A DNA stretch of 64,000 bases, taken from contig DF237273.1 in NCBI GenBank assembly GCA_000708835.1, positions 1-64,000 of the forward strand, in the 5' to 3' direction. This DNA comes from Klebsormidium nitens (taxonomy: Eukaryota > Plantae > Klebsormidiophyceae). Within the stretch, counting starts at the first letter, position 1; the number at the start of each line of letters is the position of its first letter. The translations under genes were made by a program, and so were the position numbers. Below, piece by piece: positions 3,942 through 30,400 of this stretch. Below the pieces are notes generated by a model that saw nothing but the letters and a program-made list of their open reading frames with translations, made no database searches and was not told the DNA's origin.

Positions 3942-4615
3942 TTATTCCTCTATTACTCATTACCCACCGTCTCAAGTTCCATTCTCTTTGTACATTTGTC
4001 ATGTGGTGATGGAGGCTTTGCAAGAGGTTCCATATTCAAATAATCAATGGGTAATAGAGTAATAGGGTAACAGAGATGTGTGCTTGAGGCTTCTTCATGG
4101 GTACAGTCATGTGTGTGTGTGTGTGTTATAAGATAATGAAGGGGTAATAAGCTATTTGGTACTCAACGACTTCAGGAAGGTTTGTCTTTCTTGCTTTCTC
4201 GGGTCAATATGTGCCCCTCCTCATCCCTTCTCACCACCAACATATGACAGCTGGAGCAAGGGTAGAATCATGATGGAGCGATGCTGCTGATCTCCTGTAT
4301 TACTCGTTACTCTATTACCACTGTCTCAAGTTCCATTCTCTTTTGTACATTTGTCATGTGGTGATGGGCTTTAGAAGAGGTTCCATATTCAAATAATCAA
4401 TGGGTAATAGAGTAATAGAGTAATAGAGATGTGTGCTTGAGGCTTCTTCATGGGTACAGTCATGTGTGTGTGTGTGTGTGTTATAAGGTAATGAAGGGGT
4501 AATAAGCTATTTGGTACTCAACGACTTTAGGAAGATTTGACTTTCTTGCTTTCTCGAGTCAAACAATGTGCCCCTCCCCATCCCTTCTCACTACCCACTC
4601 ATGATGATTCGAGCA
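3942..4615. repeat. Tandem ~355-bp duplication; each copy has an inverted repeat of GTAATAG(A) iterons and a (GT)n tract
   Basis: 3942-~4260 aligns with 4298-~4615. TATTACTCGTTACTCTATTACC (4298-4319) pairs with GGTAATAGAGTAATAGAGTAATA (4403-4425); the first copy has the same arrangement at 3942-3965 and 4049-4070. Confidence 0.93.
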
Positions 4616-7333
4616 AAACGAGCACTTTTGCTCTGCGGCGGATTGTCGCGACTCTTTTGACTCTTTTGAAGCATCAACAAGCTCCTGAAGAGCTTTGGAA
4701 TCTGTCATCCATGGCCCTTCTTCATCCTCGGTATAGTCGAGCCGTTGCCAGGTGTCTACCCATTCCACAGTCGAGCTCATAAGCTTGCCTTTATGGAGAG
4801 CCTCGCAGATAGCGCCCTGTGGGGCAAACCACCATCCCTTATGGGTTCGAACCCCCTGAATGGAGCGTGCCTGCGGTCGCATATTGAAAACGGCATTGAG
4901 AGAGCGCATCAAGACGTTGACGCCGGTATGGCGGTCTTCTTTGATGTCCATCTGATGCAGGAGCGTGTCATAAGTCCGCTTGATGTCTGTCGATGCTACC
5001 CACGTCTCCAAAGAAGGGTGAAAGCACCCGTTCTCGAGCAGCGCTTGCATCATATTGACGTGGGGTGGAATGGAGTGTTCTTTAAGGCCTTCCCCCCAAG
5101 TTGTGACTGGCATCTTCTGAGAATTCCAATTGGATATTTCAATGGATGATAGATATCGATGGAGGTGATATGCGGTCTCGGGTTTCTCCAACTGCTCCAC
5201 GAGCTCATCAAAGTATTGCTTGTTTCCCATCTTGGCATCTGAGACTTGCTGGCAAGAGTATCGGCGATCGTCTGCCTCTCGTTTGACAGACCAAAAGTTG
5301 TTTGTGGTGAAGACGATATTGCTTTTGTCATCCACGCTGATAGGGTCTTGGCCTTTGCGCTCCATACACGTCGTCTCCTGAGTGATTAGGGACTTTATCC
5401 GGTCGTTCATCCGATACGCTCCGCCCCAACTGCCACATTCGTCCAACACAATCAACAACCTGTTGGCTGCTAGTGAGTTGAATTTGCCAATGATCTTTTC
5501 GATTTCGTTGCAATACAAATAATATATGGCGCCAAGGATCATCCGTCCAAAAAAGTCCCACAATACAGACTTTCCGCACCCTTGCCCACTGCGAAACACG
5601 AGAGCGACACCAATCTTCCTCCAAGGCTTCTGAACGGCGTGCGCCATCCAACGAAGGTTGTAGTCAAACCGCTCCTTTGAGCCATCGCACAAGATGTTGC
5701 GGAGGTGCCACATGAGCTTTGGCATCTGTTCCTCGCACTTCACGAGCTCCGACTCCGTCAATCTGCGGTCGAGCGGTTTGAATTTCAGCCCGGAGAACAG
5801 ATTGAAATGTCGTGATGACCCCTTTGACGGGTCCGGCTCGAATACGATTCGATCGTATTCCCGGCGTTTAGGACTGCTCTCCCAGAATCTGGCAACCTCC
5901 TTGCTTTTTCCAGGTAGGCTCTGGAGTTGGAAATTCCCGCAGACCTCCAAAAAGTTGCGGCCGGACCGAGCGATGGTCTCCTGGGGCTGAAGCTGCCCAT
6001 TCTCGTCTCTCGAGTAGATCATTTCCAGATAAACAGCCTTTGTCGAGCGGACAACGGCAAAGTAATGGTTCATGATACGCAAATCGAGATCGAGCAAGTC
6101 CAGTTTTGCTTTCCTTGTTCGTACGTCATCTTCCTTTTTCTTCCTTTTCTCGTCGCTTTCATCCGTGGACGGCTCGAAGGGAAGAATGTAGCTCTCGCAA
6201 GTCTTGAAAAGTTCCCCTTCCGCTCTCAGAGGCAAACACTCGGGCCAAAAGTGAATGCCCAGCAGTTGCTTTGGTCGATCAATGCACCCTGGACTGAGAC
6301 AGCGGTACACAAGAATGCATCCGTTGCTCATGATGCTAAACTGGTTCGAATCGTGTTGATGACCATTTAAGCAAGTTCGCGTGCCGTTTGTTTTGAACTT
6401 TAGGATCTGCCACCCATTAGGGGTCATTTCTCCAACACCGTTGAACGTGCCGGTGTCGTCTTGCACCTTATCACGCAGCAACCTCTTGATCTCTTGGAGC
6501 GCGCCTTCCAATCCGGGCAGGGCCTCCGTGTTTTGCACATTTCCAAGAGGTGCTGATGACATCGATGTTGAGTTCTCAATAACAGGTGAGGTGGCATTCG
6601 AGTCATTCTCACGTGACATGTGCTTATTTGATGTCTCAATCTTGTCTGTTGCGGTCTGTTGAACGTGATCGTTGAGAAACTTTGCAAGCCAGAGAGGCAT
6701 GTCATGGCATGCATCAAAGCTTGGAGGCCCGTTGAGCCATTGGTATGTTGCAAGCTTTCCCTGATCCTTGACGTAGCTTGCGGGGTGAGCATAAACGACT
6801 CCTCCACCAGCTCGACCGTCAATTCTATAGACAGTGTTGCCAACCTTGATGGTCTCAAAGTTACGGGTGCATTTGAGGCCAGGCGAAGTCGCCTTGAAGT
6901 AGAAATGAAGCCCGCCAGAACCTGTTTGAGCTTTGAGTGTTTGGGGCTCGCCATGTTCCTTAACAAGACGGTTCCAGAGCTCGATTCCCGGCTTTTTGTT
7001 ATCTTTGTTGGACACATCAATATCAATCACAAACACCCGACTGGGACGTGTCAGGATCGCGACTCCATTGGCGTCCTTCCTCTGCCGCATTGCTTCATCG
7101 ATCGAATATTTCCACAATTCGGGCGTCGTGATGTGTGCGTACTTGTGTGGAAAGTCGGCACCTTTCGTACCCTCTTTTTCATTCCAGAACATGCGCACGG
7201 GAATTGCATAGAGCCCAACATTGGAGAGTCGTTGAATCTCGTCTGCAATGGCTCGGGGCCCTACGGGCCTGGGGACATGAGCGGCCTGAGGTTCTGAGAG
7301 GCTGGCCTGGGCGTCTGCCATTTCTTTGTACAT
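4559..7333 (-). CDS. Primase-polymerase (bifunctional Prim-Pol-like AEP) + Zn-binding linker + D5/NrS-1-like SF3 helicase, 924 aa, intronless
   Basis: VFVIDIDV and QTGSGGLHFYF primase motifs; C..GHQH...RCLSPGC; Walker A FRSGQGCGKS; Walker B IVLDEC; motif C FTTNN; ADDRRY. Confidence 0.9.
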   Translation of the reverse strand: MYKEMADAQASLSEPQAAHVPRPVGPRAIADEIQRLSNVGLYAIPVRMFWNEKEGTKGADFPHKYAHITTPELWKYSIDEAMRQRKDANGVAILTRPSRVFVIDIDVSNKDNKKPGIELWNRLVKEHGEPQTLKAQTGSGGLHFYFKATSPGLKCTRNFETIKVGNTVYRIDGRAGGGVVYAHPASYVKDQGKLATYQWLNGPPSFDACHDMPLWLAKFLNDHVQQTATDKIETSNKHMSRENDSNATSPVIENSTSMSSAPLGNVQNTEALPGLEGALQEIKRLLRDKVQDDTGTFNGVGEMTPNGWQILKFKTNGTRTCLNGHQHDSNQFSIMSNGCILVYRCLSPGCIDRPKQLLGIHFWPECLPLRAEGELFKTCESYILPFEPSTDESDEKRKKKEDDVRTRKAKLDLLDLDLRIMNHYFAVVRSTKAVYLEMIYSRDENGQLQPQETIARSGRNFLEVCGNFQLQSLPGKSKEVARFWESSPKRREYDRIVFEPDPSKGSSRHFNLFSGLKFKPLDRRLTESELVKCEEQMPKLMWHLRNILCDGSKERFDYNLRWMAHAVQKPWRKIGVALVFRSGQGCGKSVLWDFFGRMILGAIYYLYCNEIEKIIGKFNSLAANRLLIVLDECGSWGGAYRMNDRIKSLITQETTCMERKGQDPISVDDKSNIVFTTNNFWSVKREADDRRYSCQQVSDAKMGNKQYFDELVEQLEKPETAYHLHRYLSSIEISNWNSQKMPVTTWGEGLKEHSIPPHVNMMQALLENGCFHPSLETWVASTDIKRTYDTLLHQMDIKEDRHTGVNVLMRSLNAVFNMRPQARSIQGVRTHKGWWFAPQGAICEALHKGKLMSSTVEWVDTWQRLDYTEDEEGPWMTDSKALQELVDASKESKESRQSAAEQKCSFCSNHHEWVVRRDGEGHIV

Positions 7334-7810: not shown

Positions 7811-8866
7811 TCAAAACTGTATCCGAGTTCCATCAGGATTGAATTTCTTCTCATATGTCCGCTGTGCCATAGCTGCCGTGTGCAACATGCTCCGCGCGAG
7901 GTCGTCGCGCTCGGCAATGCTCGGAGCATCTTTAAAGAGGTTGCTGACGCAAATTTTGCGAAGGAGACACGAACCCACACTCGCGTCCTTAAAAAGGCCC
8001 GTGCTACAAAACTTGGTCAGATAGTTTCGACTCATCGGTTTGTCGGGCGACTTAATCTGAGACAAGAGGTATTTTCTGGGAAAGACCTGAAGGCTTTCGG
8101 CAATGACATTGTTGCATCGGGTCGACATGTCTATCGAAGTGGGTCCGTGGTGCTTGACGGTCTTATAATCGTTCAATACCAAACGAAACTGATCTTGTGC
8201 AATCTCTAAGAGATAGTTTCCGGAACCGGACATGATCTCACGTACCTCGGCCGTTTTGATGTCCTTCAAGCGCACAATGGGGCAATCGCTGTAGTCATTG
8301 CGGATTGCTGGTTGATAGCTATAAAGGCACAGTATGAGGTGGCGAAAAAGCACAAATTTGTCCTCATCGGTCAATTCTTCGGGCCTCTTGTGCAGGATCT
8401 TACGGTTCACGTGCCTTTGCAGCTCCACTCGGCGATCACTTATCTGATTGAGTGTCTTCCAATTGGCCGCTTCCCGCTCTGTCAGCTGCTGGGGAGGAGG
8501 CTTCGCATCTTCCATGAGCTTACGAACCTCTATGTACCGCTTGTAATAGGCATCATAGAGCTGTTTATCGTCGGAGAATGCTTTGCGCACTAGAACCAAG
8601 AGCGGATTGATCCCAGTGGCCTGCATTGACAGCTTTGTGGAATATGTTTCCTGAAAGTACTTGATGATTCCGTCGGCATCCTTGATCCAATCGAAGCTGG
8701 TGAAGTCTCGTTGTCTTTTGAACCCTTGAAACAAGCGCACGACATGCTTCATATATTGTTGAATCGTCAGGTCCTTTCGAGTACCATCCTCGAACGCCGA
8801 GCGCAGCAGCCTTTCTCCCTGGGTTACGGTGATTATGCGTCTCGTGGTTTCAACAGACCCTTGCAT
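7811..8866 (-). CDS. Tyrosine recombinase/integrase, 351 aa
   Basis: Catalytic residues in the expected order: PAIRNDY (R), DYKTVKHHG (K), CLLRKI (HxxR-like), LARSMLHT (H/W), AQRTY (Y). Confidence 0.88.
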   Translation of the reverse strand: MQGSVETTRRIITVTQGERLLRSAFEDGTRKDLTIQQYMKHVVRLFQGFKRQRDFTSFDWIKDADGIIKYFQETYSTKLSMQATGINPLLVLVRKAFSDDKQLYDAYYKRYIEVRKLMEDAKPPPQQLTEREAANWKTLNQISDRRVELQRHVNRKILHKRPEELTDEDKFVLFRHLILCLYSYQPAIRNDYSDCPIVRLKDIKTAEVREIMSGSGNYLLEIAQDQFRLVLNDYKTVKHHGPTSIDMSTRCNNVIAESLQVFPRKYLLSQIKSPDKPMSRNYLTKFCSTGLFKDASVGSCLLRKICVSNLFKDAPSIAERDDLARSMLHTAAMAQRTYEKKFNPDGTRIQF

Positions 8867-9923: not shown

Positions 9924-10300
9924 TCACGGCCCGTAGTGACCCCTGCCTCGATTGATGCGATGCACTCTCGCCGCCATCCCCGACCCAGTGCGAACTGGTG
10001 CAAAAACGGTATGGTGTTTGATATCGCGTCCGACAAATCCGAGAGGAGTCTCACAATCCGCCAGGACAAATATGCCAATAGCGTAGGTGTCATACCCGTT
10101 CCCCGAATGCTTGCGAAGCACGAGCTCCTGGCTGGGTCGAAGCTTGCGAACGAGGTCTCGACGGCCTTCAAAGCTGACTCCAACGGCTCGAAATAGCATG
10201 CGTCCATCTGGAAGCTGCTCCATTGGAGGGTTGGCCCAAGGTTGGCCGGTGTATTCAGCCAAGCTCTCTCCTAAGTATGTATGCGACCCGCGAGCTTGAA
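9924..10300 (-). CDS. HIRAN-domain exon, probably part of a larger spliced gene
   Basis: FRAVGVSFEGRRDLVRKLRPSQELVLRKHSGNGYDTYAIGIF...LGFVGR matches the HIRAN pattern (VAGV.F...L.REP.N.YD.NAI.V...GYVP). Candidate AG acceptors lie near 10270-10297. Confidence 0.75.
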
Positions 10301-10439
10301 GGATGAACAACTTCGAGCTATGTGCTAGATTATCACACCGACAAAGCGCTCGGCATGGTTGAGGGGGCGCCCGTCGACTTGCACCATCGTGATATACAAA
10401 GAAGCCTTCACAACAACGCAAATTGACGGCTCCGAGCCG

Positions 10440-11235
10440 TGCCGACCAGTCAAAACTTGCCTCCATAATATAAGCATATCAACTTCGAAAGGGACAATTT
10501 TTGACTCGCAGCGAAGGCCATCTTCGAAGCATTGTGAGTAATGGCGCCGACCACTCAAAAGTTGCCTCGGAGTGTAAGCTTATGAGCTTTCAAAGGCTTA
10601 ACTTTTGACTCGCATGCAAATACGGCCATTCCACTACCAACGTGAGAAACGTTGTAAGTGATGGCGCCGACCAGTCAAAAGTTGCCTCGTAGTATAAGCA
10701 TGTGAGCATTCAAAGGCTTAACTTTTGACTCGCATGCACGTACGGCCATCTCGCCCATGACCTTTGTTATACGTTGTAAGTGATGGCGCTGACCGGTCAA
10801 AACCCGCCTCGTAGTATAAGCATGTGAGCATTCAAAGGCTTAACTTTTGACTCGCATGCACGTATGGCCAGTCCACCCACAAGCTTTGGAAACATTGTAA
10901 GTGATGGCGCGGGCAGTCAAAAGTTGCCTCGTAGTATAAGCATGTGCGCATTTTAAAGGCTGAAGTTTTGACTTGCATGCACGTACGGCCATCTTGCTCA
11001 TGATCTTTGACATACTATACGGTGTAAGTGATGGCGCGGACCAGTCAAAATCTGCCTCGTAGTATAAGCATGTGAGCATTCAAAGGCTGAAGTTTTGACT
11101 TGCATGCACGTAAGACCATTCGATGAAATCAAGATATCTTTAACAATGGTTGAAGTCATAGCGCCGGGAGTCAAGATCTGCTTCGCAGTATACTGAGGCA
11201 TACCAGCCTCCAATGGTACAGCTTTTGACTCTGTC
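10440..11235 (-). repeat. Array 2 of the ~120-bp repeat family (7 units; ~97-bp near-identical repeat plus 22-29-nt variable spacers)
   Basis: Arms at about 10448, 10553, 10673, 10795, 10915, 11043 and 11169; reverse orientation relative to array 1. Confidence 0.95.
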
Positions 11236-11959
11236 ACTACGCAAGACAGAATTCATGCTGAAGTCGATGATCAAAGTGACTCGCAAAACAAGGACGCCAA
11301 TTCTGCCCTCATAATGAATAACATTAAGAATTTTTGAGAGCTTTTGCGACAACTCTACTTGTTCTGGCCACCATCAGTAGCTACTCCTACGGCCGTATAA
11401 CACAACCCTCTACCGGTAGTGTCGCCTCGTACTCATCAAGCCGACCGTACTTCTCTCGCACTTCCTGCCATAGCAACGGCTTGAAGAGGTGAGGCCGGCC
11501 AGCTACAAACTTCCCGTTCGACTTCTTCGGAGCGACGTGGTTGAGCCCGAGGCCTACGTGGAGAACCTTCTTGATGGCGTTGCGCTTCATCGTCGCCGTC
11601 AGACTCTCAGCCGTCTGGTCCATCCCGTAAAAGTCGCGAACGAAGCTGAGCCGTTCAGGCGTTGGCCCGAGCATCGTGTCGTGAATCGCTTGCAATGCAT
11701 CCTCCTCGACCGCAAACCCGTCCTCTTTGCACCTTTCCACCTCCCCCGGCTGGCAGCCCAACAATTCTGCTGAAAGCATCACCGCAAAGGGAATCCGACG
11801 CGACATGTCGCCCCTGGCAGCGACGTACTCCTTCGTGACGCCCTCCATGTCCCCTTCCCTCAGGGCTCTCGTGAAGTCGTCCATGATGTCGGAGAAAGGG
11901 GTCGTTTGGAACCTGTCCAGGAGAGCCTTTGCAGAGTCATTAACTCCATACATCTTATG

Positions 11960-12055
11960 CCTTATGCAAGAGACACTTCTTTTTAAGGCAGGGAGAAGGC
12001 AGGGCAATGCAAGAGACACTTCTTTTCAAGCAGGGAGAAGGCAGGGCAAAGCTGA
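11960..12055. repeat. Short tandem duplication (AGAGACACTTCTTTT..GCAGGGAGAAGGCAGGGCAA x2) in a predicted intron
   Basis: Two ~42-bp copies visible directly. Confidence 0.85.
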
Positions 12056-13389
12056 AGCAAGAACGACGTGCAAAGAGGCAATGCCCAGAAGCAACGATTG
12101 TTTGGAGCAAGGAGACGATCTCGCATTTGATTCGATAGAAGAAAGAACAGAGCAAAGCATAACCGAATCATCTAAGCTGATCAACCTAGCCGCAACTTGC
12201 TTGGATCTTCATAGTGTTTCCCGCTGACCTGATGTAGTTCTGGAACGGGACGAGCTCCTTTCCGCAGTGCACCACCTCGTAATTGTGGTCGACTCGACGG
12301 GGATCGACCTTGTGCACATTGCGGATGCACTCGTAGATGTGTCTCTGCCGCACCTCCACCTCGTCCAGGGTGTCAATTTCATCCTTCTCAAGGAGTTTGC
12401 GGTACGCCTCGTCATCGACCACATACCTGGCCCGCCAAACATCGTCGGCGAGGTCCTTGTCATCGTCGTTGCCAACTCTGCGCACCTGAACAGAGGGGGC
12501 TTCGTCGTCCAGATATACCTCATGGACGACGAAGCCCTGCTTGATGAGGTCAGCGCGCAAAAGCTCTCCGTAGTTCCGGAAGCTGTTGGCGACCGTGAGG
12601 ATGTTGTTCGCGTACAGGACGCAGCCGGGGGAGTTCCTGTCGCAGACCGGCCGCGTTCCCGAGGGGGCCAGCAGGAAGTCGAGATGCTCGGTGCTGCCAA
12701 GCAGCTTGGCGAGCTCGCGATCTTCGTCTTCGATCGCGCAGAAAACGTCTTCCACGGTCGAGGGAAGCGACTGGGGGCCCGCGCCTTCCTTCACATAGAT
12801 CGTGAAGTTGGTGACAGTGCGATCGCGGAAGAGCTGCTGGAGGAACGTCTCGACGGTTGGCCCCCGCTCGAAGCTGTTCATGGCGAAAGCAATGAGCTTG
12901 TCAAAGTGGGGCCGCTCTCACGAGATGCCGGGGCCGATCACGGGCGAGGAGGCGCACAGGTCTGCCGTCATGTGAGTGTCGGGATCGGTAACCGCCAGCT
13001 CGAGAGCGTCTTTTGCCGCTTTTGTCGTCGGTTTGGAGTAGAAGAACTTTCCCGACTTGGCAGTCCGGCCGTCGCTCGGGAAGCGCTGCTTGAAGGCTTC
13101 CTCGAGCTTCAGGACGTACGTCTTGCTAGACGAGGGCGCCTGCAAGGAGAAAAAGTGATGCCCCATTGGAACCAAAGTTGCGACCAGATTCTGAAACTTC
13201 TACAACGCAGTTCGAAGTAGAGGGGTAAGGCTCGAGTGTGATCGGAACGTGTAAAAGTGGAGCGCCCAAGAGTGCAGATGTATGTAACCTGCGTGTTTTC
13301 AATATTATTTGCTGACCACGGATCTCTCGGGTCAGTCTGTTATGAATCTCGTAATAACTAAGTTGACAGTCCTCACGTTCATTTTCTGA

Positions 13390-14100
13390 GAGCGTGATTC
13401 AAACTTGGGTCGGGGCGACAAGAAATTTCTCCTGCTGACGCAGCAGTCTATGGTTGATCCATTAGAAAAAGGATCGCGTGCTGCCACGTCAGCGGATTCT
13501 ACCTCTTGAAGTTAGGGTGGCCGGGAAGAGCAGGGCAGTCTTGACGTTTGTGTTTTGAAAGCTTAAAGCAGATTCCGGTTGGGGCGACAAGAGATCTCCT
13601 TGCTTACACGACAATTTGAAACTGATTCCGTGCAGAAAGGAAACAGGCGGTGCCACGTCAGCTGACTCCAATTCTCGTTGATCTGGCCTGGAAGGGCAAG
13701 GCAGTCTTAACGTCCCATTCCACAGGCTGATCGATTCCAAAAAGATTCAATTGCTGCCACGTCAGGAGACTACAATCGAACTTCGATTCTAGCCCAGAAG
13801 ACTCCGGGGAAGGTTTAACGTATATGTTGAAGAGCTTGCAGGATAAACACGGTGAAAAGAAGCACGCCCGGACCAAAACGCCACGTCACCAAACTCCAGG
13901 TCATCTCTTATTCCGGTCGGGAAGCACTGAACAGATACGACGTTCCTTTTTGGAGCTTGACACAGATTTGGGTCGGGGTTTCAGAGCTTTCCTTCTGCTA
14001 ATGCGTCAGCTCAAGCAATTCGCCCGCCGTTTCAAGATAAGCAGAAAAAACGAAAAGAAGAGATCACCACGGACCAAGCACCGGCTGCCACGTCAAAGAC
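13390..14100. repeat. Degenerate intronic repeats carrying five co-oriented GCCACGTCA motifs
   Basis: GCCACGTCA at 13483, 13652, 13756, 13880 and 14087. The first two lie in ~169-bp related units that also share GGGGCGACAAGA and GGCAGTCTT.ACGT. Confidence 0.8.
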
Positions 14101-15014
14101 TTTGATTTCGTTCAAGGTCTGTACGCGAGCTACCAAACACGACGTTCGTTCCTGAAGCTTCAAAGTTGCGTCCAGGTGTGAAAGGGTTTTCTTACTGACG
14201 AACTCACTATGACGTGCTCGCCTCTCTGCAGGGACTCCATCGTCTCAGCAATGGCCGGGCCGTAGGGGTCCTTTTGGAACCGCTTGGTCGCCGGGATGTA
14301 CTTGATCGTGGCCTTCCGTTCACCCGGGTACACCCCGCGGTTGCGGATCGTGTGCAAGGCAGCTTCTGGCCGGACCATGTGCAGCCACTGCATGACCCGG
14401 GGGCTGCCGATGTTGGCGTCCATCCCGAGCACAATCTTGGCATGCCGCGTCACCCCTTCCAGCGCCAGAAAGACCATCTTCTTTCGGGCCATGACGTCCG
14501 AGTTCATGTTGGACAGGATCATGTCCATCTCGTCCATGATGACCACGTCAAAGCTGGCGGCCAGCCTGGGGAGGGAGTTTACGCAGACAACGACCCTGCC
14601 GTCGTCAATCCTTCCAGTCACATCGAGGTAGAGCGTCGCCTCGATGCCGCGCCGCGTCAGATCCTCCGCATATTTCCTGGCGAGTGTGACGTTTGCTGCG
14701 ACCATGACGAAGTTTGCAAACGGAAATCTTTGCAGCAGCCTCTCTAGCCAGTCGTTCCCCTCCTTCGATTTGCCAATGCCCTTGTTGGCCGACGTCAGGA
14801 TCGTTTTCCTGGCAGGGGAGTTGATGGAGAAGGGCGGATAGGGGCGCATGCCGTCCACCTTGACGTAGTCCTCCGTCCAGCCCGTGATTTGCCCCGTCTC
14901 CAAATGGAGCAGACGTGCGATTCCGCTGCAGAACGAGAGGGCACACGACACCTTATTTACAACTCTTTATGATCCAACGACCGTTCTAGCTCGAAGAAGA
15001 GGGATTCATAAACG

Positions 15015-15470
15015 GAAGGGATGGCCGGGCTTGGCTACAAGTCAAAAGTTCCGTCGTGAATACCTGGAATGCTTATACTCACAAGGGAGGTTTTGACTGG
15101 TTGACACTGTTAGTCGCAAAGGATAATCAAAGACGGAGTGGCGGGGCTTGGCTGTGAGTCAAAAAATCCGCCGTGGAAAGCTGCAATGATTATACTATGA
15201 GGGCAGGTTTTGACTGGTCGACGCCATTAGTCACAAAGTTTCACGAACAACAAGGGATTGGCCGAGCTTGACTACGAGTCAAAAGTTCCCCCGTGGAGAG
15301 CTGCAATGCTTATACTCTGAGAGGAAGTTTTGACTGGTCGGCATGTTGATCACAGAGGCTAGTCCCGAGACGAAAGGAATGGCCGGACTTAGGCTTCGAG
15401 TCGAAAGTTTAGCCGTCAGAAGCTGCTACCCTTATATCATGAGGGCAAGGCTTGACTGATTGACACACAA
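15015..15470 (+). repeat. Array 3 of the ~120-bp repeat family (4 units) inside intron 14926-15680
   Basis: Arms at about 15040, 15157, 15277 and 15399; antisense to the host primase-helicase transcript. Confidence 0.95.
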
Positions 15471-18293
15471 GTGGCGAACAGATCCTACATTCGACCCTGA
15501 GGTATCTTGCATCATCTCACGACGCTAGTGACGGAAGCTGATTTGAAAGCATAAACTACGGCGACTCGGTTCCGATCTCGACCTTCCAGCCTGGGGCCTC
15601 CGAAAACGTACTTCATGGGACCGTTGCTCGGAAGGTGGGAAATCAAATCAAAGTGATTCCCGTTGCCCGTGATGGCTCACCTGCAGGTGGCGGAGTGGCA
15701 CTTGTAGAATGCCACCCCCGGCCGGGACCGGCGGTAGAGCAGGTACGTGTTGTTGTTGCCCGGGGACGTGTGCGGACGGCCAGCGAGGAGACATGTGGGC
15801 TCCGGCACGTCGAAGTGGACCGTGAAGACCCCCGAGCCGACGACGTGAACGCGCGCGAGCGTAGCGCCGGGGTGCTCCTGCTGATAGTACTCCACCAGCA
15901 CGCGCTGCTCCTGCTCGCCCAGGTCCGCCCGATTCTGCCCGCCATCTTCCGGGAGGCCCGCATCTCTCACGCGCATCGTGGGGCGCTGCGGCCGCGACAA
16001 CGTGGGGGCGTGCTGCTGGAGGTACGCCTCGAGGCGCGCCGCGTCTAGCTGGGCGCAGCACTGCAGCTCCGCAGCCGAATAAAGCCCCGCGAGGTGGTCC
16101 ACGATGAGCTCCGAGCTGCCCTCGCTCGGCTCGAGGACGCGGTCGCTCCCCTTTTTGCTCGACCACAGCATACGCCAATTCTGGAACTTGGAGTAGACCG
16201 TGCCGTCCCAGATCAGCTTCGGGCGGCCCCGCTGATCCTCCGTCCAGACGAACTCGGCGCTGCGCGCCAGATGGGGGGGCGGGTTCTTCTGGAAGTGGTC
16301 GAACGCTTTTGCAAACAGGCTCCGCGCTCGGCTATCCTCCAGGTAAAACCCCTTGAGCACCCCGTGGACGCTGTACCTGAACCCCCCCGCGACTGCCCCA
16401 TGCGCCGTGCTCTCCTCGAACCGGACCGCCTCTCCCAACACTCCCAGAACCGCCTCCAGAAACCCATCCCTCAGCCGCTCAAAGTGCTGCTTCCGCTCAG
16501 CAAAATCTGCATCCCGCGCCCCGACCGCCTCCTCGGAGTCGCCCGCGCACACGCTCAAAGGCACGTAGTAGTCCAGGCCGAAGTAGAGCAGCGAAGGTGT
16601 CTCTTCGAGCAGACACTCGTACCGGTGCTTCCTCTGGCCCCTGAGGCGTGCGCAGTAAGCCAGCAGCGCAGGGACGTCCGGGAAGCTGGTGAACATCTTC
16701 GCAGCGGAATCTCGCGCGGAGTCAGCGGCGACGACGATGCCGTGGCCGTGGAGGGTCTTCCAAGCCACGGCGAGATCCTTGGGGCCCCGGCCGGTCGGAC
16801 TCTCCTTGCTCTTGAACCACTGCTGACCGTAGACCGCCGTCGTGTGCCTCTGCAGAGTTGGACAAATGCCATCAGGAAAATGTGCGGCTGATCGTGCGAC
16901 TGATAGAGCTTCGGCTTTCAAGTGTGGTCCTCAAGCTCAGTGAGCCCGTGCAGAGTTGCAACGACAGATCTAAGTCAAACTCTCGGACTCAGATTGTCAA
17001 CCAGGGGAGCGATAGTCGTCCGAAAGCAGGGATGGTATGCACAAGTGCTGCAAGAGAGACCCGTGTCTGCCCGTGCTTAATCCTCAGGCAGCGAGGTATT
17101 TCTCGGAGGAAATGAAGCATCTCCTTTCTATGCCGCTTTCATTTAGTGTTCTCGCAGCCGAGAAAAGGTCGATGTACACCAAACTCGAGTGCTCAAAAGA
17201 CCATGTGGCCGCTTTAGACCAAAGGTAGATTACCGATTCGAAGTCGCGCACGCTCTCACCAGCAGACTGCCAACGGAGTCTTGATCTCTGGTTGGAGCTA
17301 GCTCGGTCGTATCCTGCCTGGCCTCCAACCCCATTTCCTGCACGCAAACGCAGACCTTTATGAGCACGTGCGCAAAAGACGGACCTGGAGATCCTCTCGT
17401 CCGCGGCGTCGAAACTAGACAACGCCCAGCAGTACAAGCGTGCAACTTTCCGATTGCGGACGATGTGATGCAAAAGCAAGGGCGGCCATCACACCTGGCA
17501 GCGCGCTGACCAGCAGCCAGGCTGATCTTGATTTCATCTGGCATGCTTGCCGAATTTAACGACCAGATCCGATCGGTCTGGTCGACATTTGGACGAACAG
17601 CGCGACTTCTTGTCGCACGCAAGACCTTTGGAATAGCTTCCAACATCATTCAGTAAGAGTGATCCTCTCTGAGAGTTGGGACATGAAATCCGGATGCTTA
17701 CCTGTACAATCGGAGCCCCGCCCACAGGATGATGCTCGGCAAGCTCCCCGGCGGGAGGCTCCGGGTTCTCCTCGGGCGCATCCTGACAATAGACTCTTGC
17801 CGCGTGAAGTTCCTGGGCACATGCACATGATGACATGATTGAAAGAGTGGAGCCTGCAAAAACCCTAATCATGAAGATATTGTTTGTGAACCAACTTTCA
17901 GAAGAGGAGAAGCGGGCGCGCGCCTCCGCGAATCGCGCTCCAGAGGCCCGGCACTTCCTACTAGACATGAGAACCGGGTTCTGAAGTGCTCGAGTTGAAC
18001 CAGAGGTGTTGCTTCTCACCCCTCACTGATTGCACACACGCAGCTGGCACCGGACTTCTCTTTCGAAGGCAATATTACACGTGTGGCAGCGCCCGAGTTG
18101 TAATGCAGCTTACCGTTTCGCACGGGCTTCCGGTCCTCTAGAACCGGAGGGCGCTGGGGAGCTCTCCCTGCTCGAGGAGGCCCTTTTTCTGTCCGCGACC
18201 TCCTGCACACAAGAACCAGGCGCTCGCTCGATTCAAGAAGGGTGTCACACAGGCTTAGGGGGAACGCTTTGGCACTCCAAGGGCATCGGAATC

Positions 18294-18756: not shown

Positions 18757-18894
18757 GTGCCGGCTCTGTAGCACCGGGATGGGGGCCGCTCGCAGGATGC
18801 GGGTCGCTGCTGGCGGGGCCCGGGTCCTGCAAGTGCGCAAGGGACTTTGTGAAGAGCCATCAATCGGGACGCTCTAAATGAAGCAGCGTTCATT

Positions 18895-19215
18895 CTCGCC
18901 GCCAGCAGTCAAAAGTTCCTCTCAGTATAAGCACGCTCTTCGTAAACAGGCCCCGAGTTTTGACTCCGAGATGAGGTCAACCATCCTTGTTTGAGAAGCT
19001 TGCGATTGATGGCGCCGCCCGGCAGTCAAAAGTTCCTTTCACAATAAGCACGTTTATTGCACAAGGCCCAAGGTTTTTGACTCTGACATGAGACCGCCAG
19101 ACTATCCCACTCAAGCGTTTGAACAAAAGCGCAGGTCAGTCAAAACTTGCCTCTCAGTCTAAGCATATCAGCTTTCAGTGGCGCACCTTTTGACTTGCAG
19201 GCAAGTCCGTCCATC
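18895..19215 (-). repeat. Array 4 of the ~120-bp repeat family (3 units)
   Basis: Arms at about 18907, 19024 and 19138. Confidence 0.92.
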
Positions 19216-19222
19216 CTGTCCA

Positions 19223-22200
19223 CTACTGTTGAAGCTTGAGCCGGGACCAACGAGGAGCGTATGCGACCCAGAACTCGGTGCTCACCCGACTGATAGTCTG
19301 GGGTCGCAGACGCGGCACGATCATGCACAGATTTGTAAACTCCTCCCCAAAGTCCGATTCGTCGAAGCCGCCATCGTCTTCGGGTTCTAGCGGACCGTCG
19401 GAGCTAGCGCTGGCGTCAGGCACGAGCACATCGCCCCCCGGGTGCTGCACCTCCTCCTCCGACCCAGCAGCACCGCTCCGCCTTGCCGAAACGCTGCCGT
19501 TCTCACCCGAGGACTCCGATGATGGGAGCAGCACCCGACGGCGCCGCCTGGTTTGTGGAGAGGGGGTTGCCTCATCACAAACCCGCCGCTTTCGGAGCTG
19601 CTGATGAGCCTGGGCAGCCGCCCACCGCCCGTTGCTTGCGGAAGAACCCTGCGAAGGGCTGCCCTCCTCGGCTGAGCACTTCGACCGGAGAGGCAGGAGA
19701 CGGGCTCCCGGCTTGAAGCCCTGAGCCTGAAGCTGAGAAACGTCCAACTCGGAGTCGGATTCCCTGGCGGCACGAAACCTGCCTTGCGCAACCACCGGAT
19801 TCTCTTCGTCTTGACTTCCGTCGTCGATCATGAGGCGATCTTGGGATGTCTCCACGTCCCCAGATTCGCCCACGCTCTCAAACTCCGCCCCCTCAATGTC
19901 CTCGCCTTCTTCTTCAGATCCTGATCGCCCAAACCCGGACTCACTGGCCGCACTCGTCGCCGACCGCTGGTTGCCGCCGCTTTTCTGGACGAAGGATGGG
20001 CCTTTTGTCAGAAATTAATCAAGAGACGTCTTCTGCAAATCAGCGCCGAGGGCATCCCGTGGAAGCAAGGCAGGCCGTCATCACGAATTGTTGACGTGGT
20101 CCAAAAGCTTCAGATAGAACCTCAAATGTTTCTTGCAGCGCGTGGACTCTGACCATCTGGAGCCAACCCAATCTGAAAAGGTCTCGCTAAAGAGACATGC
20201 GAGGAACAACGAACGAGTTCAACACATTCCTTGCTGGGAACGCATCACAACCACTCAAAATCTCAGCAACACTAGCATTGCCGAATCGCAGTTCTGGCCC
20301 TTGAAGCAGATCTCAAACGAACCGCTTTCGAGATGCGTACAACTTATACAGCTTGAACGAGCTCAGATCAATCCATAGTTCTCACCTCTGCTGTGGCGCC
20401 GCAACCCTTGACTGCAGCGCCAGCTGTCTCTCCCAATGAAGTGGACAGCCGGTCCTCTTCGTCTGCTCTGTTGTCTTCCACCTTGAAAGACGATGAGTGA
20501 CATTCGATCAGAACATGCGGAGCACATTCTTACCACAATTTCAATAAGCATACAACCAGCGTATGCAAACCAGTGTCGCAGCACTCCACCCTACTCACAG
20601 TCTTAAAATACGAAGTGCAATGCAAAGCAAACGAACGTCGCCAATGCGCAACAGATGATCAATGCAAAAGGCTGGCCCTCACATATCATCCAAGGTGATA
20701 ATGAAGACCTACTTTGGCACAATTTGCAGCACGACATTTTTCGAAAGCCAGCCCCTCGAGTCGCCTTAAAGACTCGGAATGCTTTGACTTCGTTAGTCGA
20801 GACGAAATGCATCCGTGGCAGCTTCCGATCGTGGTGCTAGAGCAAAGATACACATCTTACCAGGGCAGTCAGGAGGCCGTCTTCTATCCTGTCCAAATGA
20901 CTGAGCTCTCTCTGGAGCAATTCCGCGTCCGCCCTCGGCATCTCTTCCGGGAACTCGGGCCTTTCGATGCCCCCTGTCACCACGCGGTCAGATGCTCGAG
21001 AGGCAATGCCTCCCTTCGAATCTGCAGGGCTGGGGTCCACCTGGAAAATGGAGAGGTGAACGGGTCAACTTACACGCATGAGCAGGTGCTCTGAGGAGTC
21101 ACCGCGCAGCTTTCTCGTTGGCACAGTTGTGGCAAAACTACTGTCCCTATCAATTGACTTGCAAAAACGCGATACCCATGTTTCCTGCAACAGCGATGAG
21201 TGGCCTGGGACGAGCATTGGAAACGTCTTCGATCACTGGATCATGGGCGCCTTAACTGTTATGCGACAAGTGTTAAGTGCTTACCTGCTCGTAAAGCTTC
21301 CCATTCTTCTGCCACTTCTCAAACTCCTCAGGAACAGCGCGCTGACCACATGCCGGCCGCCAGCTCTGTTCGACGTCCTGCACAACGGCCTCTCTTCTTA
21401 CCATCAGGTTTCGTCTGTGGGTTACGAGTTCAGATGACGCTACCATTCCAAAAGCAGAAAGAAGTGATGCGACCGCAGAACGGTCTGACAGGCTCAAGCA
21501 AAGCTTTGAAGCAAAGCACTGCACTCGTTGTTGTAAACTATCACAGAGCCGTGCTACGAGTTGTTGAGTCAGCATGGGCTCGTCCTCACCTCTCGAGAGG
21601 GCAAATTCACAAGCTGACGGCAAGGGCTGACATCAGGTGCAGGTGCGTCCTTATTCTCGTTTCCCTGTGATTGGAGCGCTGGCCCAGGATTGCTTTCGAC
21701 GCCGCCGATCAGCAGAAGCTTTGCTGCAAAATGAATGCCAATGATGGACAAGCGAGCCAAACCGACAGTTCAGGTCATGAAAGAAGCAGATGGCGTGCAC
21801 GCCTCTGTTGACGGACCACACCTTGTCAATAATAATAAAGAAACCCACTCTCAGCACTTTAAGGCCATGTGCAATGTGTGGTCCAGCAGACTGTCAGACC
21901 GGCTATCCGGTCACACTCTTTTCGGCCAAACAGAAGAAGGGCAGCTACAAGCAGCCCGCACCTATTTGATAGAGTGACTCACCATTGAGGAGCTTGCTCT
22001 TGGGGGTCGCATCCCACCTGAAGTTGTCATGCTGATATCCGTCGCATGCTGTGGAAGATAGGCAAACATATTGAGTTGGCACGTGAGTAGGCAAGGTTTG
22101 GTTTCAAGCTCGACAGGATTCTCTTTGAGAGACATCGTAGAGGTGGGGTTTCAGGATTAGGAGAGACCAAGCAAAGTACAAGCAGCAGAACAGTCCATTG

Positions 22201-24175
22201 GGAGTAAGATTGTGCAATGAGTCCGGGATCAACAAGCAAGAGTCAGCTTGCTCTTTGCCCGAGAAAACCTCACCATGCCTACTCCCGAGCTCTGCCTCCT
22301 CGTCAAGCGCCCGCGCTAGCTCTTTCTTCAACTTGAAAGCTTCACAGACACGTGCCCACTCTGGAAAAAAGGCACGATGCACATGTCTTTGCGATAAGCG
22401 CTTACATGCAGGAGAGTCGTTGGCTTGTCGACGACAGCCAGCATGCCTGCTCAGTCTCAAGATTTGCATTTGCAAACTTGCATGGTTGGACCAGGCAAGC
22501 TCTTTGCCAAATGATTGACGGCGCGCCGACACAGCGGTAGCCGCATAGAACTCACCTGCCCGGGCCTTCTCAATCTGGAAGCAGCGAGTTCTGACTGGGC
22601 GATGCGCACCGCAGAAGCACTTGAGGTTGCCCCCTTCCTTGCCTCCACGCAGCGCATAGGTCGCGGGGTTGCTGCATTCTCCGCAAAGGAGACCGTGTGG
22701 AACTGGAAGGGAAAGCACAAACAGTCGAAACCAGTTCGGAAAGCGTCACGCATGTAAAGTCCTGGTTGATTCATGCGTACCTTCTCATATATCCCCGGCC
22801 ATACACACAAGAGTCTTGTACAGTTGCAAACTCCTAGACCTAAGGCTCAGATGCCCTCCCCCAAAGCGCTGACTCCGACTCCCGCAAGGCCCTATTAAGG
22901 TGCTTCATCAAGATGGCCCTATTAAGGTGCTGCTGCTCACCCTTGGCCCCAAAGAGGTAGCTGGCCAGTAGCTCCTTTGCTTTCCTCGCTTTCCTGGAAG
23001 CGCCACCAGCTGGGGGGCGGGCCTGGCTCGTTGCCGCTGGGCTCGCGGCCGCCGGGCTTGCGGCAGTCCTGTGAGCTCCACGGGAGGCGCTTGCTGGTCG
23101 CTGCAGCCCCTCCATGTGGGCCTGCCTGATCGACGTCAAGACCTTCTCGAAGCCCTCTTGCAGGCCCGCGTCTGCAGTGCCCGCCAGCGCCTGGAGACCA
23201 GCCATCGCGGCATGCAGGCTCCCATCCCAGGCAGCCTTCGACCAGAGGAGGCCTGCAGACCCGAGCTCCTCTCGAGCGCGCTGGCACAGGGTTCCCGCCA
23301 CCTTCCGGAAGATGCGGTGGCCTCTCTTGGAGTAGGTGAGGAAGCCTCTGGCCGCGCTCGCCACGAGCGCTCTGATGGCCGCCGGCGGGAGAGCATCATC
23401 GCGGGGTGGGCCGCATGTGTCCTGCAAGGAAGCCAAGGGGGCACGATGCGTCAGACCTCATGTCATCTCGAAGGAGCGAGCAGACACTTCTTCATCGGGT
23501 GAAAGCCAGTGCACAACTCTGATGAGAAGTGCGGTTGAGGGCAGAATCGGGCCAAGGCCATTCAACCCATCATCCTGAGCATTGAGACCGACCAGTCAAA
23601 ACTTTCCCTTAAAGTATAAGCATTCCAGATTTTCACGACAAAACTTTTGACTCCCGCCCTGGCCCTCATCCTAACAGTACTGTAAGGGTTAGCGATGGGG
23701 CCAGTCAAATTTTGCCCCATGAATATAAGCATTCCAACCTTTGAAGGCAGGACTTTTGACTCGCATAGCTCCCAAGCCAATCCAAACCGGGATCCTGAAC
23801 AAGCGGGAGCGCCCACCAGTCAAAACTTCCCTGAAGAGTATAAGCATTCCAGACTTTCACGACAGAATTTTTGACTCCCGCCCTGGCCCACGCGTTGTGA
23901 GAGGTAGCGCTTGGGGCCGTCAAAATGTGCTCCATGAATATAAGCATTCCGGACTTTCAGGCAAAGTTTTTGACTTGCAGTCAACCTGGCCATTTATCCC
24001 ATGATCCTGAAGATCTTGTTAGCGGCATTCAAGACGCTGGCCTTACCCCAGTCCTCGCAGGACCAGCTTTTATCTCCGCGCCACTGTTCGCGCCGTAAAC
24101 CACCTCATGCATGGGGTGGGGCGGGGGGGTGCTCGAGTTGGGTGCGGCAGCAGATGAGCGCGTTGCTCCACTTCC
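19223..24175 (-). other. Run of exon-like segments of one or more uncharacterised spliced genes of the element
   Basis: Minus-strand AG/GT-bounded open segments near 24175-24047, 23425-22941, 22703-22557 (Cys motif), 21725-21589 (2A-like), ~21420-21290, 21040-20862, 20480-20390 and ~19990-19223 (acidic/basic low complexity). Connectivity is not established. Confidence 0.45.
23585..23997 (-). repeat. Array 5 of the ~120-bp repeat family (4 units, alternating dimer structure)
   Basis: Arms at about 23594, 23703, 23818 and 23918; unit 1 resembles unit 3 and unit 2 resembles unit 4. A GG|GTAAGG donor lies upstream at ~24046. Confidence 0.93.
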
Positions 24176-24269
24176 CCCCTGCATAGGGAGAGTTCGAGAT
24201 GACGACAGGGGAGGCACATGTGTCTCTGCTGCTGTCTGGCTGTGTGTCTGGCACGCAAAGCACTGGTCT

Positions 24270-24610
24270 ACGCACTTGAGCTTCCAAGCCAGAGCAAACT
24301 GTCGAGTCTGTGCGCCATGAACCTCACAAGAACCTCAGAAAAGTGCGCGGGGGGGCTGACAAGCTGCACCAGCTGGTCTAAGCATTCTAGCCTCCAAGCC
24401 AATGCAGATTGTCCAGTCTTTGCACCATGAAGCACAGAGGAAGCTGGGAAAGTGCCTCGCGGGGCCTGACAATCTGCACCAGCTGGTTTCGGCATTGAGC
24501 CTCCAAGCCAATGCAAATTGTCGGAGCTTTGCTCTGCTGACTGCAGAAGGACCAAGGAAAGTGCCTGGCAGAAGTTCGCAGTTTGCACCAGCTGGTCTAC
24601 GTAGCTGGTG
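24270..24610. repeat. Three ~109-bp tandem repeats (unrelated to the hairpin family)
   Basis: GCCTCCAAGCCA..GCA.A.TGTC and TGCACCAGCTGGT recur at ~109-bp intervals. Confidence 0.85.
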
Positions 24611-27482: not shown

Positions 27483-30400
27483 CTATCTCCCCCCCCGCTT
27501 CCACTTGTCCACCAGTCCTAGCTGTGAATCTAGCGCGCCGAACGCCACTTCAGCGTGCGTGTGTGCAACAATCTGTACAGATCCTGCTTGCGCTCGTGTG
27601 CTCCCCAACTGCGCTGGCTTCTGCTTAGTGTGCGGAGAAACCCCATTCGTGATGAGATCACCTGGCACGACGTAGCAGAACGTCACCTTCACAGACTCGA
27701 GCTCCGCGTCGCCCAGCCACGGCTTGATGTTGCTAATATGCATCGCCGTTTGGCTCGAGTGACCATGCTCCTCCGCCGACTGCAGCGTCACTTGGACTTT
27801 CGTGAGCCGATCAACGGACCCTGCAGAAGGCGCGAACGAGACAAGATCACAAACGTCAGCAATTTCCTGAAGAACTTCGGATTGCAGCCACATCAACAAT
27901 CTCGACACAGCACTTTTGAGGCATCCGCGACGATTCTGTAATCGGTTTGCTTATTCTGCCATAATTCAACCTAATCTTTGCTGACAACGTGCTTGGTGTC
28001 AGACGTCAGGGCCATGTCCCGAATTACCTTGCGTTACGCTGGATTAGGCGTGAATGACGGCAGTTGAGCGAGGCTTCTACCCAAACCCTACGTGTAACTC
28101 CCAAACGCAGGTCTTCACTGCCCACCGAATACTCTGGCCGGTACGTGCTTCCGGATTTTAAAGAGCACGCTATTTGAAACCCAGTGCAAGCAGACCACTG
28201 ACCAGTTCGCTAGCAGCCAGCCCGTAGAAAAGGGAAATCAAGCTCCGGTGACATCACTATCAGCTCCTTGCCAAATATTAGCCAAAGTTCGCCTAAGGTT
28301 TGCGGCTAAAAATCTGCCACAACAGTCACAGATGTCCCAAATTCGCTGTATCTAGCAACATCGAAGACCTTGTGTAGGCAGTCACGAAGCTGCTCTAATA
28401 TCAAACTACCTACAAACCGTCGATAACAAATCAGCAACACTTTAGCCTTCGGACAGGCACGTGGTAGTACCACTGTATTATATGAACTGGACGCCAATAG
28501 CGAGTCAGCTGCATTAAAAGAAGCTCATGACTCCGGATGCTCACCAAGCTCCTGCCCACGCCTCTTGAGCACCAGGATGGCCATATCCATGGCGGGGTAG
28601 AATGGCGTCCGAGGCACAAAGCAGACAATGCGCGCCCCCAGTCCGCTCTTCTGAAAGTCCGTGATTTCGGTCAGGACAGCAGGGGCCTCTGCGCCGCGCT
28701 CAAAGAACACCAGCTTGACCTGCTCCTCCTTCGAGTCCTGAAGCACTGCCTTGTAGCCCCCCCCGTCGACGATCGCACCTATGGCACAGCGCTCCGCAAG
28801 CAGTCCAGCTACCGCAGGTACCCGCTCCCCCTCAAGCTCGGACCTCAGAGTGGCCCAGACTGCCACATCACTGTAGAAGACAGCGCGCCCTTGCACCTGC
28901 TCCACGAAGTGCGCGATCGCCTCTCGCACTAGCGGAAACGCTGGCCGCACTCTGCCCCCCTCCACCGCCACATTCCGCAAATCGATTTCGTCCCAATCAG
29001 TGAGATCGAAAGCGACAAACGACTCGTTGTAAACCATCTTCTTCATTTGGCGGATCCACTTCTCAACTTTTTCCCCCCCCTTCGCTTTGACCTTCTCGTA
29101 GATTCGCTCGAGGCTCCTGGTTATCTGCACCACCCGATCACACTCCAAGAACCGCTCCCAGGCCGCCCAGTCGTACTTCGCCTTCTCCCCAGTCTGCTCA
29201 CTCTCAGCCCCCCCCTCCTTGCGAGATTCTTCCGACCTGATGGCCCCGCCCCCTCCAGCATCCGCTGAGCTCGCCTCAGCCTCCTCGTGCGCCTCCGGGC
29301 CCGCCGCCTGCCGAAACGGATTCACACCCGCTGCGCGCCCTTCATCCCCCCCCTTGGTCCCCAATGCTCCTCCCCGTGCGTTTCCCTTCCCGACGCTGCC
29401 GGGCAGTTCTCCTCCCTTCACCGGTTCCAAGCGCCCCACTTCAAACCTTGGGCTTGCACCAAAGACGCTGTGGACGAGGTATTCCCCCGCGCGTCTTTGG
29501 TAGTAGGCTTCGTGCCAATCCGCCAGGCACCCTGCTACTCCCCCGAGCTTTTCCCTCACAAGGCGTTGGACAGCCGGGGTGGAGCACTCTGTCCCGTAGA
29601 TGAGGTCGTACAGCTTTTGCTCTTCCTGTACAGTGCAGGTCTGATTAGAAAGCTGAAGTGAAAGAATTCTAACCCTGCCTCAATCCAGTGGGCATTCCAC
29701 GTTTCTGACCCTAATTTCATAGGAAGGAGCTAAGGAACTGAGGCCTTACTCGACCTAGCAATGACACCATCTTTTTAAGAGAAGCAACACTCCCAGTCCA
29801 CACAAACAAAAGTGAACACTGAAGAAGGCCTCTGCCTGCTCACGGATTTCTATGCGCGCAGACAGCTACTTAATTGCCCTACTCCAGAGCTGAATGACCA
29901 GACTCATCTTAAAACATTTAAGGTAGATAGCAATTCAAGAGCTGCTCAGCTGCACAGGATATGATCCAGCAAACCTCGATTACGTACCTGAGTGAGCCCA
30001 TCGTGCACTGGGAACATGTAGGCCTCCTTATGCAGCGTCTCGTTCTCTTTCGTATGCTCCTCACCCCCTGCGCTCGTGACCACAACTTTTCTGAAAAAGC
30101 GGAGACTTGCATCCAACACCTTTTTTGCACCTGGATCGGCGAAGAGATCCTGGTACTGATCCAGGCACCAGAGGAGTTCCTCCTCCTTCTTGCTCAGGAA
30201 GTCCTCCAGATCTTCCATTGAGTTCAGGCTTGCAATTTCTTCGATCATCTCCTCATTCCCGGCGTACGCCCATGCAAGGGCCTGCTTCATCGCCTCAACT
30301 CTCTTTTCCCTAAAGTATCCACAATCCAGGATTGGCGCCACGCGCCGCTCCTTTCCTTCCCATGCTGCTGCAAGGTAGATCACCAGTTGCAGGATAAGGT

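Follow-up and report, generated by a model that had tools for sequence, protein, structure and literature searches.

The 64,000-nucleotide stretch of Klebsormidium nitens DNA analysed here (GenBank assembly GCA_000708835.1, contig DF237273.1, positions 1–64,000 of the forward strand; hereafter, the window) encodes on its minus strand a primase block and a helicase block that are held apart by an array of tandem repeats. The locus raises the question of whether the two blocks belong to one gene with the array in an intron, and of what such arrays, five of which occur in the window, might do. A preliminary description of the sequence had proposed that the intervening array (array 3) lies in a spliceosomal intron that fuses the primase to an origin-binding helicase. 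The comparisons presented below make it highly probable that both the intron (intron 1) and the primase–helicase fusion are real. The gene is situated in the region from position 1 to about 24.6 kb, which on balance appears to be one copy of a multicopy, integrated, replicative virus-like element in the nuclear genome of a Klebsormidium-type streptophyte alga; its other genes are described after the arrays.

A primase–helicase gene interrupted by an intron

The gene occupies positions 11387–16921 of the minus strand, the 5' bound being provisional, and has at least two introns. Domain searches were run exon by exon. The primase block (15681–16921, minus strand) returned no Pfam or PDB match when searched alone, and it matches just 34 proteins in 1.84 billion; as a profile together with 18 relatives, it matched structures of human PrimPol at E 3e-15. 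The serine of primase motif II is kept in 19/19 sequences and the histidine in 18/19. A UL52-type Cys/His finger ends the primase domain, with its Cys/His columns kept in 8/8 to 13/13 relatives; two relatives carry Pfam Herpes_UL52 (as does P0033) or PriCT_2. The first helicase block (14208–14925, minus strand) matches Pfam Herpes_ori_bp (PF02399) over the Walker A/B half with 49 bits against a cut-off of 20, and weakly matches UL9-type origin-binding proteins in the PDB (E 0.007). Taken together, the PrimPol profile match, the conserved motifs and finger, and the Herpes_ori_bp match mark the predicted product as a UL9-family SF2 helicase preceded by a probable archaeo-eukaryotic primase that ends in a UL52-like Cys/His finger.

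Downstream of the first helicase block the gene continues across intron 2 (13140–14207, minus strand; 1068 nt), which contains no repeat units and whose position is shared with the Augustus-predicted K. nitens model P0014 (GAQ89318.1). The C-terminal blocks gave no family match. Further coding blocks, as far as the stop at 11387, have matches in P0014, the related protein P0035 and the related locus L003, and the stop itself is conserved in L003. The last coding block contains a stretch of 43 bp that is duplicated in tandem (11964–12049; 2 copies, 95% matches).

That both domains reside in one polypeptide is shown by exon-by-exon homology. P0014 spans the junction, its residues 2–212 aligning to the end of exon 1 and residues 222–469 to exon 2, with a gap of ten residues between the two alignments. 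Both domains also occur in a single full-length protein in P0035, which has 1116 residues and is about 25% identical, and in 38 relatives from metagenome contigs (~1,100–1,180 residues), all known from their protein sequences.

Intron 1 itself (14926–15680, minus strand; GT-AG, phase 2, 755 nt) begins with the donor CAG/GTGAGC, in which GT corresponds to 15680–15679, and ends in a pyrimidine-rich tract leading to CAG, in which AG corresponds to 14927–14926. Both signals were found on the minus strand where the preliminary description had placed them. The upstream open frame of 414 codons (15680–16921, minus strand) runs into a stop two codons beyond the donor, and the acceptor leads into a second frame (14163–14924, minus strand); joining 15681 to 14925 preserves the reading frame, as had been claimed. 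Read in the frame of exon 1, the intron of the window contains 13 stops, within an overall range of 8–13. All four repeat units of array 3 (15015–15464) fall inside the stretch that would be spliced out.

The intron is supported by its conservation. The donor TGCAG/GT occurs at the identical codon, that of the last Cys of the finger followed by AG/GT, in six lineages: the window with L001, L003 with L004, L005, L006, L008 and L002. Their proteins are 37–98% identical to that of the window (L001 98%, L003/L004 85%, L005 82%, the K. nitens copies L006 and L008 39% and 38%, and L002 39%). The acceptor CAG and its pyrimidine tract are retained alongside the donor in every lineage whose DNA extends that far, and several metagenomic open reading frame (ORF) calls end exactly at the donor. 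Neither the length nor the sequence of the intron is held in the same way: lengths of 755, 754, 906, 574 and 227 nt represent all three remainders modulo 3, and the intron of the window is 52–66% identical, with many gaps, to those of L003 and L005, versus 79–91% for the flanking 300 nt of exon.

A further argument comes from the 25 codons that separate the acceptor from the first ATG of the downstream frame. Between the window and L005, 13 of these codons are identical, 10 differ synonymously and 2 non-synonymously, a pattern that points to purifying selection. As the open stretch upstream of them contains no ATG, these codons would be translated and reachable by splicing only.

Intron 1 is placed exactly between the primase and helicase domains, and its occurrence in lineages that are merely 37–41% identical indicates that it is old. 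Array-free lineages have it as well (L006, 227 nt), and the DNA of P0014 shows a 227-nt GT-AG intron at this position without repeat units. Without its 450-nt array the intron of the window would measure about 300 nt. The array thus entered, or expanded in, an older intron.

Anatomy and placement of the repeat arrays

The five main arrays are built from one unit of ~120 bp (type A). Array 1 (7–1238; about 9–10 units) lies upstream of the plus-strand gene A, and array 2 (10418–11230; about 7 units) lies between the stop of the helicase gene and a HIRAN-like gene. Array 3 comprises the four units within intron 1, array 4 (18877–19227) has 3 units and array 5 (23564–24007) has 4. A short array of another type (type B; 24263–24532, 110 bp x 2.5) belongs to the kind that fills the K. 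nitens copy L008. From 24.6 to 64 kb the window has no arrays.

The units of array 3 are direct repeats spaced 117–122 nt apart (Tandem Repeats Finder). The window contains 15 instances of the unit pattern, defined as an 8-nt arm, 30–60 nt and the inverted arm, against 0 in 100 shuffles, and a search for the 11-nt arm with one mismatch allowed gave 41 matches (1.3 expected), all but two of them within 1–24 kb. An alignment of 44 units taken from four lineages (the window, L003, L005 and L007) has invariant or near-invariant columns nowhere but in the two inverted arms of 8 nt and in an ATAAGC at the centre. The arms stand about 43 nt apart, the TATA-like ATAAGC lies about 25–30 nt before the right arm, and the sequence between the fixed blocks drifts. 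Short fixed words separated by freely varying spacers are a hallmark of DNA that is bound by proteins.

Between the intron arrays of the window and L003 the units are 70% identical, versus 54–60% when the units of array 3 are set against the remaining arrays of their own genome. The same pairing with L003 holds for arrays 2, 4 and 5, so that the arrays are orthologous by position. Among the relatives, the number of units in the intron varies from 3 to 6; the window and L001 both have 4. Arrays 2, 4 and 5 have one orientation, upstream of minus-strand genes, and array 1 is flipped, as is the gene that follows it. The intron array, with ATAAGC on the sense strand of the gene, is inverted relative to its host gene and to the gene-upstream arrays, consistent with the antisense placement noted in the preliminary description, and the orientations are conserved in L003, L005 and L007.

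The suggestion that the arrays in general are housed in introns is not supported by the comparison, and array 3 is the only one shown to be intronic. Array 2 lies between the conserved stop at 11387 and the ATG of the HIRAN-like gene (about 10223), and arrays 1 and 5 both lie upstream of the start codons of K. nitens models for the neighbouring genes. The sequence does contain the splice motifs that had been pointed out close to 1385, around 24046 and ahead of the HIRAN-like frame, but they have no comparative support, and exons joined across arrays 1, 2 or 5 were seen in no relative or model. Two K. nitens Augustus models place arrays in introns; these are predictions only, and weak evidence.

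The comparison with intronic clusters of small nucleolar RNAs (snoRNAs) or microRNAs (miRNAs) fared no better. Neither Rfam, with its gathering thresholds, nor a scan for tRNAs returned a match anywhere in the window. Single-strand DNA folds of eight units had z-scores between −1.8 and +0.95, and the consensus structure from RNAalifold is a 7-bp stem of −2.9 kcal/mol with 0 compensatory pairs; the ninth position of the arm is unable to pair in many units. The units are not convincing hairpins, and action at the level of DNA, the other option that had been offered for array 3, is the better reading.

Arm sequence follows the type of primase–helicase

Two related loci, L008 and L077, lack the type A unit and have arrays of their own with the same build (96–110 bp, inverted arms of 10–17 nt), different words and the same places. 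L008 carries type B arrays and L077 type C arrays; in each, one array stands directly before the HIRAN-like gene, and others in L077 lie near the end of the element.

A comparison of the element copies separates the arms from the rest of the element (the backbone). For four backbone genes L008 and the window are 69–90% identical, whereas a fifth reaches 50% and the D5-like gene 44%; the primase of L008 is only 38% identical, and the arms of L008 are type B. L003 is gene for gene no closer in its backbone, at 45–80%, with the limit that L003 offers no comparison for gene A or for the two genes best kept in L008; its primase–helicase is 85–88% identical to that of the window, and it has type A arms. 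L077 retains gene A (85%) and the D5-like gene (65%), its helicase gene is not detectably similar, and its arms are type C. In these copies, arm type tracks the type of primase–helicase and not the backbone, an association that resembles cognate pairs of initiators and sites.

The surrounding element and its genomic setting

The assignment of the first 24.6 kb to a multicopy integrated element follows from its relatives in K. nitens, from collinear loci and from the host-type genes beyond its end. The best named relatives of both primase–helicases, namely the interrupted gene and the D5-like gene, are all from K. nitens, and three K. nitens loci are collinear with positions 1–24.5 kb of the window. 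The D5-like gene is matched by at least 11 K. nitens gene models from separate scaffolds, and the element family is therefore highly multicopy; K. nitens copies include DF237459.1, DF237223.1 and DF237380.1. Methylated giant-virus-like inserts have been described in Klebsormidium (PMC5294986, PMC12344493).

The D5-like gene (4559–7333, minus strand) is an uninterrupted frame of 924 codons encoding a primase-helicase with Prim-Pol and DUF5906 domains; an exact look-up of the protein gave no record. Gene A (2145–3932, plus strand), an orphan of 595 codons in a stretch of 63% G+C, has no family or PDB match. It is the most conserved gene of the element, with 85–90% protein identity to K. nitens copies whose primases are at most 38% identical. 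The HIRAN-like gene (9924–10223, minus strand) scores 19.4 bits against Pfam HIRAN, below the cut-off of 24.7, and its conservation with relatives begins at its own ATG. An ORF at 7811–8866 (minus strand, 351 codons) had been taken by eye for a tyrosine recombinase; it has no Pfam, NCBIfam or PDB match, and the assignment was dropped. A single-sequence AlphaFold model of this ORF reached a predicted local distance difference test score (pLDDT) of 38 and was of no use.

Pfam and NCBIfam searches of the other frames of 9–23.5 kb gave only weak HIRAN and weak CyRepA1 helicase-like matches. Viewed against the hallmark genes of Nucleocytoviricota (capsid, B-family polymerase, packaging ATPase, VLTF3), the region 1–24.6 kb yielded only the D5-like primase-helicase and the interrupted gene, which resembles mimivirus R8; the remaining frames are orphans. 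No capsid or polymerase gene was seen in these 24 kb, and the element extends beyond the start of the window. Beyond about 24.6 kb, ordinary multi-exon genes of host type are found (a protein kinase, an ALG6/ALG8 glycosyltransferase, a GNAT acetyltransferase and a CUE gene), and a NACHT-like NTPase lies at 29949–30788. A 32-bp tandem repeat at 62818–62907 (2.2–2.4 copies) has a unit that starts with the telomere-like word TTAGGGTTAAG; no chromosome end is visible anywhere near it.

Proposed role of the arrays and alternative explanations

The explanation that we favour on balance combines the element copy, the spliced fusion and the arrays as cis-acting sites. The primase–helicase would be expressed as one protein via host splicing, and in the lineage of the window a dispersed repeat array would have come to sit in the pre-existing intron 1, a place where non-coding DNA is harmless to the gene. 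The arrays would be double-stranded cis-acting sites, each ~120-bp unit offering two inverted arms of 8–11 nt about 43 nt apart together with the fixed central ATAAGC, and each element lineage would have its own arm sequence, recognised by an element-encoded DNA-binding protein. By analogy with the homologous regions of baculoviruses and the iterons of plasmids and phages, the arrays may serve as origin and/or enhancer modules. That the arrays are functional cis-acting sites is the firmer part of this proposal and is probable from the pattern of conservation. Because arm type follows primase–helicase type, the primase–helicase is the best candidate reader of the arms; this assignment is tentative and, in our estimate, falls somewhat short of an even chance.

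Several observations weigh against this explanation. Only three arm types underlie the co-variation of arms and primase–helicase, which could also result from shared descent. L006 and L002, whose primases are each 39% identical to that of the window, show no arrays in the 11–13 kb seen. The window has the type B array at 24263–24532 and a type B-like remnant (about 10372–10430) without a type B primase. (The remnant is a single unit near the HIRAN-like gene; like those of the type B array, its arms are unlike the arms of arrays 1–5.) In array 5 the window has 4 units, versus at least 8 in the 98%-identical L001 (1946–3278), as is seen in neutral satellites. No DNA-binding domain for the arms was found. 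We infer the splicing of intron 1 from sequence, and the K. nitens models, including P0014, which shows this intron, are Augustus predictions; P0014 thus provides the view of independent software and not transcript proof.

The state of the gene also counts against a present role. In the window and its twin L001, the helicase part contains one in-frame stop and no frameshift, and the primase of the window lacks one near-invariant acidic residue of a catalytic motif. Elsewhere, L003/L004 show a single stop and a single frameshift, the part of L005 seen is unbroken, and L008 lacks the helicase core. (In L008, DF237870.1, at 6807–7284, the donor is kept after the primase block and the annotated model P0010 reads on past it.) Over 182 codons compared between the window and L005, 45 synonymous differences stand against 33 non-synonymous ones, an excess that indicates selection on the gene until recently. 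The window copy has probably stopped working only recently, and with a stop and a lost catalytic residue, the role of the arrays may no longer be in use in it.

The alternative that survives best is that the arrays are a selfish or neutral satellite, an expanded foldback repeat or one resembling miniature inverted-repeat transposable elements, which has spread through this element lineage, is tolerated where harmless, introns included, and has no function. The array-free intron of L006, the variable copy number both of the intron array and of array 5, the weak folds and the decay of the element copies are all in line with this. A functionless satellite would, however, leave unexplained why three short blocks are invariant across the 44 units while the sequence between them drifts, why the position and orientation of the arrays are held over about 20% sequence divergence, and why other lineages have different arms in the same build and the same places. 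Nor were arrays of the unit found outside the element: a metagenome scan with the type A unit, in a collection that evidently lacks metagenomes of the relatives, gave 68 loci, each with a single chance match, and not one array. We regard the satellite explanation as somewhat unlikely.

Less likely still is a purely transcriptional role, in which the arrays would be tandem promoters or enhancers with ATAAGC as a TATA-like box and would take no part in replication; array 3 would then drive an antisense or internal transcript. The placement of arrays 1, 2, 4 and 5, each directly upstream of a gene block and all oriented alike relative to the gene strand (array 1 being flipped, as gene A is), fits such a role, as does the position of the TATA-like motif relative to the right arm. 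Array 3 does not, as it is oppositely oriented and inside a gene, and arm type tracks the replication initiator and not the neighbouring genes. A transcriptional activity is in any case compatible with the explanation that we favour, as the homologous regions of baculoviruses act in both ways.

That the primase and helicase are separate genes with no intron and with the array in the spacer between them is very improbable. Prokaryote-style gene callers do split the two, and an ATG is available 25 codons into the downstream frame, but the codons before this ATG are conserved with mostly synonymous changes and no earlier start codon, GT and AG are fixed at one codon in divergent lineages, and the distant full-length relatives have fused domains; on these grounds the reading was rejected. 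An intronic cluster of hairpins of the snoRNA or miRNA kind, released from the transcript of the host gene, which the tandem units with inverted arms in an intron superficially recall, can be dismissed almost entirely, since the units show no Rfam match or tRNA, no stable fold and no covariation, their best conserved internal block falls in the would-be loop, and most arrays lie outside introns.

Comparison with known systems

Fusions of a primase to a UL9-like helicase have been described for mimivirus R8, pF1055L of African swine fever virus, ostreid herpesvirus 1 (OsHV-1) and some yaraviruses (PMC10962738), and form the family NCVOG0024 (PMC3493329). The gene of the window shares with the R8/pF1055L type the two domains in identical order and the Herpes_ori_bp helicase, and a distant named match of its relatives is a mimivirus 'DEAD-like helicase'. 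It differs from that type in having at least two spliceosomal introns and in belonging to a multicopy element of an algal nuclear genome, and its identity to full-length, uninterrupted relatives is only about 25%.

The homologous regions of baculoviruses act as both enhancers and replication origins. Like them, and like comparable dispersed arrays in large DNA viruses, the arrays of the window are several dispersed direct-repeat arrays with an imperfect, interrupted palindrome in each, of a copy number that differs between arrays and between strains, and mostly intergenic. There is no sequence similarity between the two; the baculovirus palindrome is a compact 30 bp, whereas the unit here is ~120 bp with arms 43 nt apart, one of the arrays here is in an intron, and the origin or enhancer role here is putative. 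The origin of phage lambda lies inside gene O, and plasmid Rep systems have iterons. With iteron origins the arrays share repeated sites that change together with the initiator gene, one set of which lies within the initiator gene itself; unlike in lambda, the sites lie in an intron rather than in coding sequence, and the arrays number at least five, not one.

The resemblance to intronic snoRNA and miRNA clusters is limited to the tandem arrangement of units in an intron, as the units here lack the stable fold, covariation and Rfam match. Spliceosomal introns are present in endogenous giant viruses and abundant in mirusviruses, where some carry genes (PMC9693826, PMC12768974). Intron 1 resembles these in being of the GT-AG class and in interrupting a virus-type gene that would be read in a host nucleus (PMC9693826, PMC12768974). 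Mirusvirus introns can carry homing endonuclease genes as cargo, whereas here the cargo is a non-coding repeat array; a further difference is the position of intron 1, which is conserved across lineages of 37–41% identity. The primase–helicase fusion and the presence of introns in endogenous viral genes are thus already known; what is new is that the position of an intron separating primase from helicase is conserved, that this intron carries a repeat array, and that each lineage has its own set of arms.

Implications

A more speculative extension, which we hold to be unlikely, is that the intron array and the surrounding primase–helicase gene form a linked specificity module, in which an initiator and its own recognition sites stay together because the sites lie inside the gene, and that this module is swapped as a unit between otherwise similar Klebsormidium elements, with the other arrays being re-tuned to the new initiator. 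If so, the intron would be a safe harbour for a replication origin in a eukaryotic virus-like element, and the arrangement would be a eukaryotic counterpart of the origin of lambda inside gene O. Independently of this, copies with the same backbone, another initiator and other arms offer a natural comparison that points to which protein reads which sites. The element family, uncharacterised so far, abounds in Klebsormidium, an alga near the origin of land plants, and its virus-type replication gene appears to have been in the algal nucleus long enough to keep two introns across lineages that are less than 40% identical.

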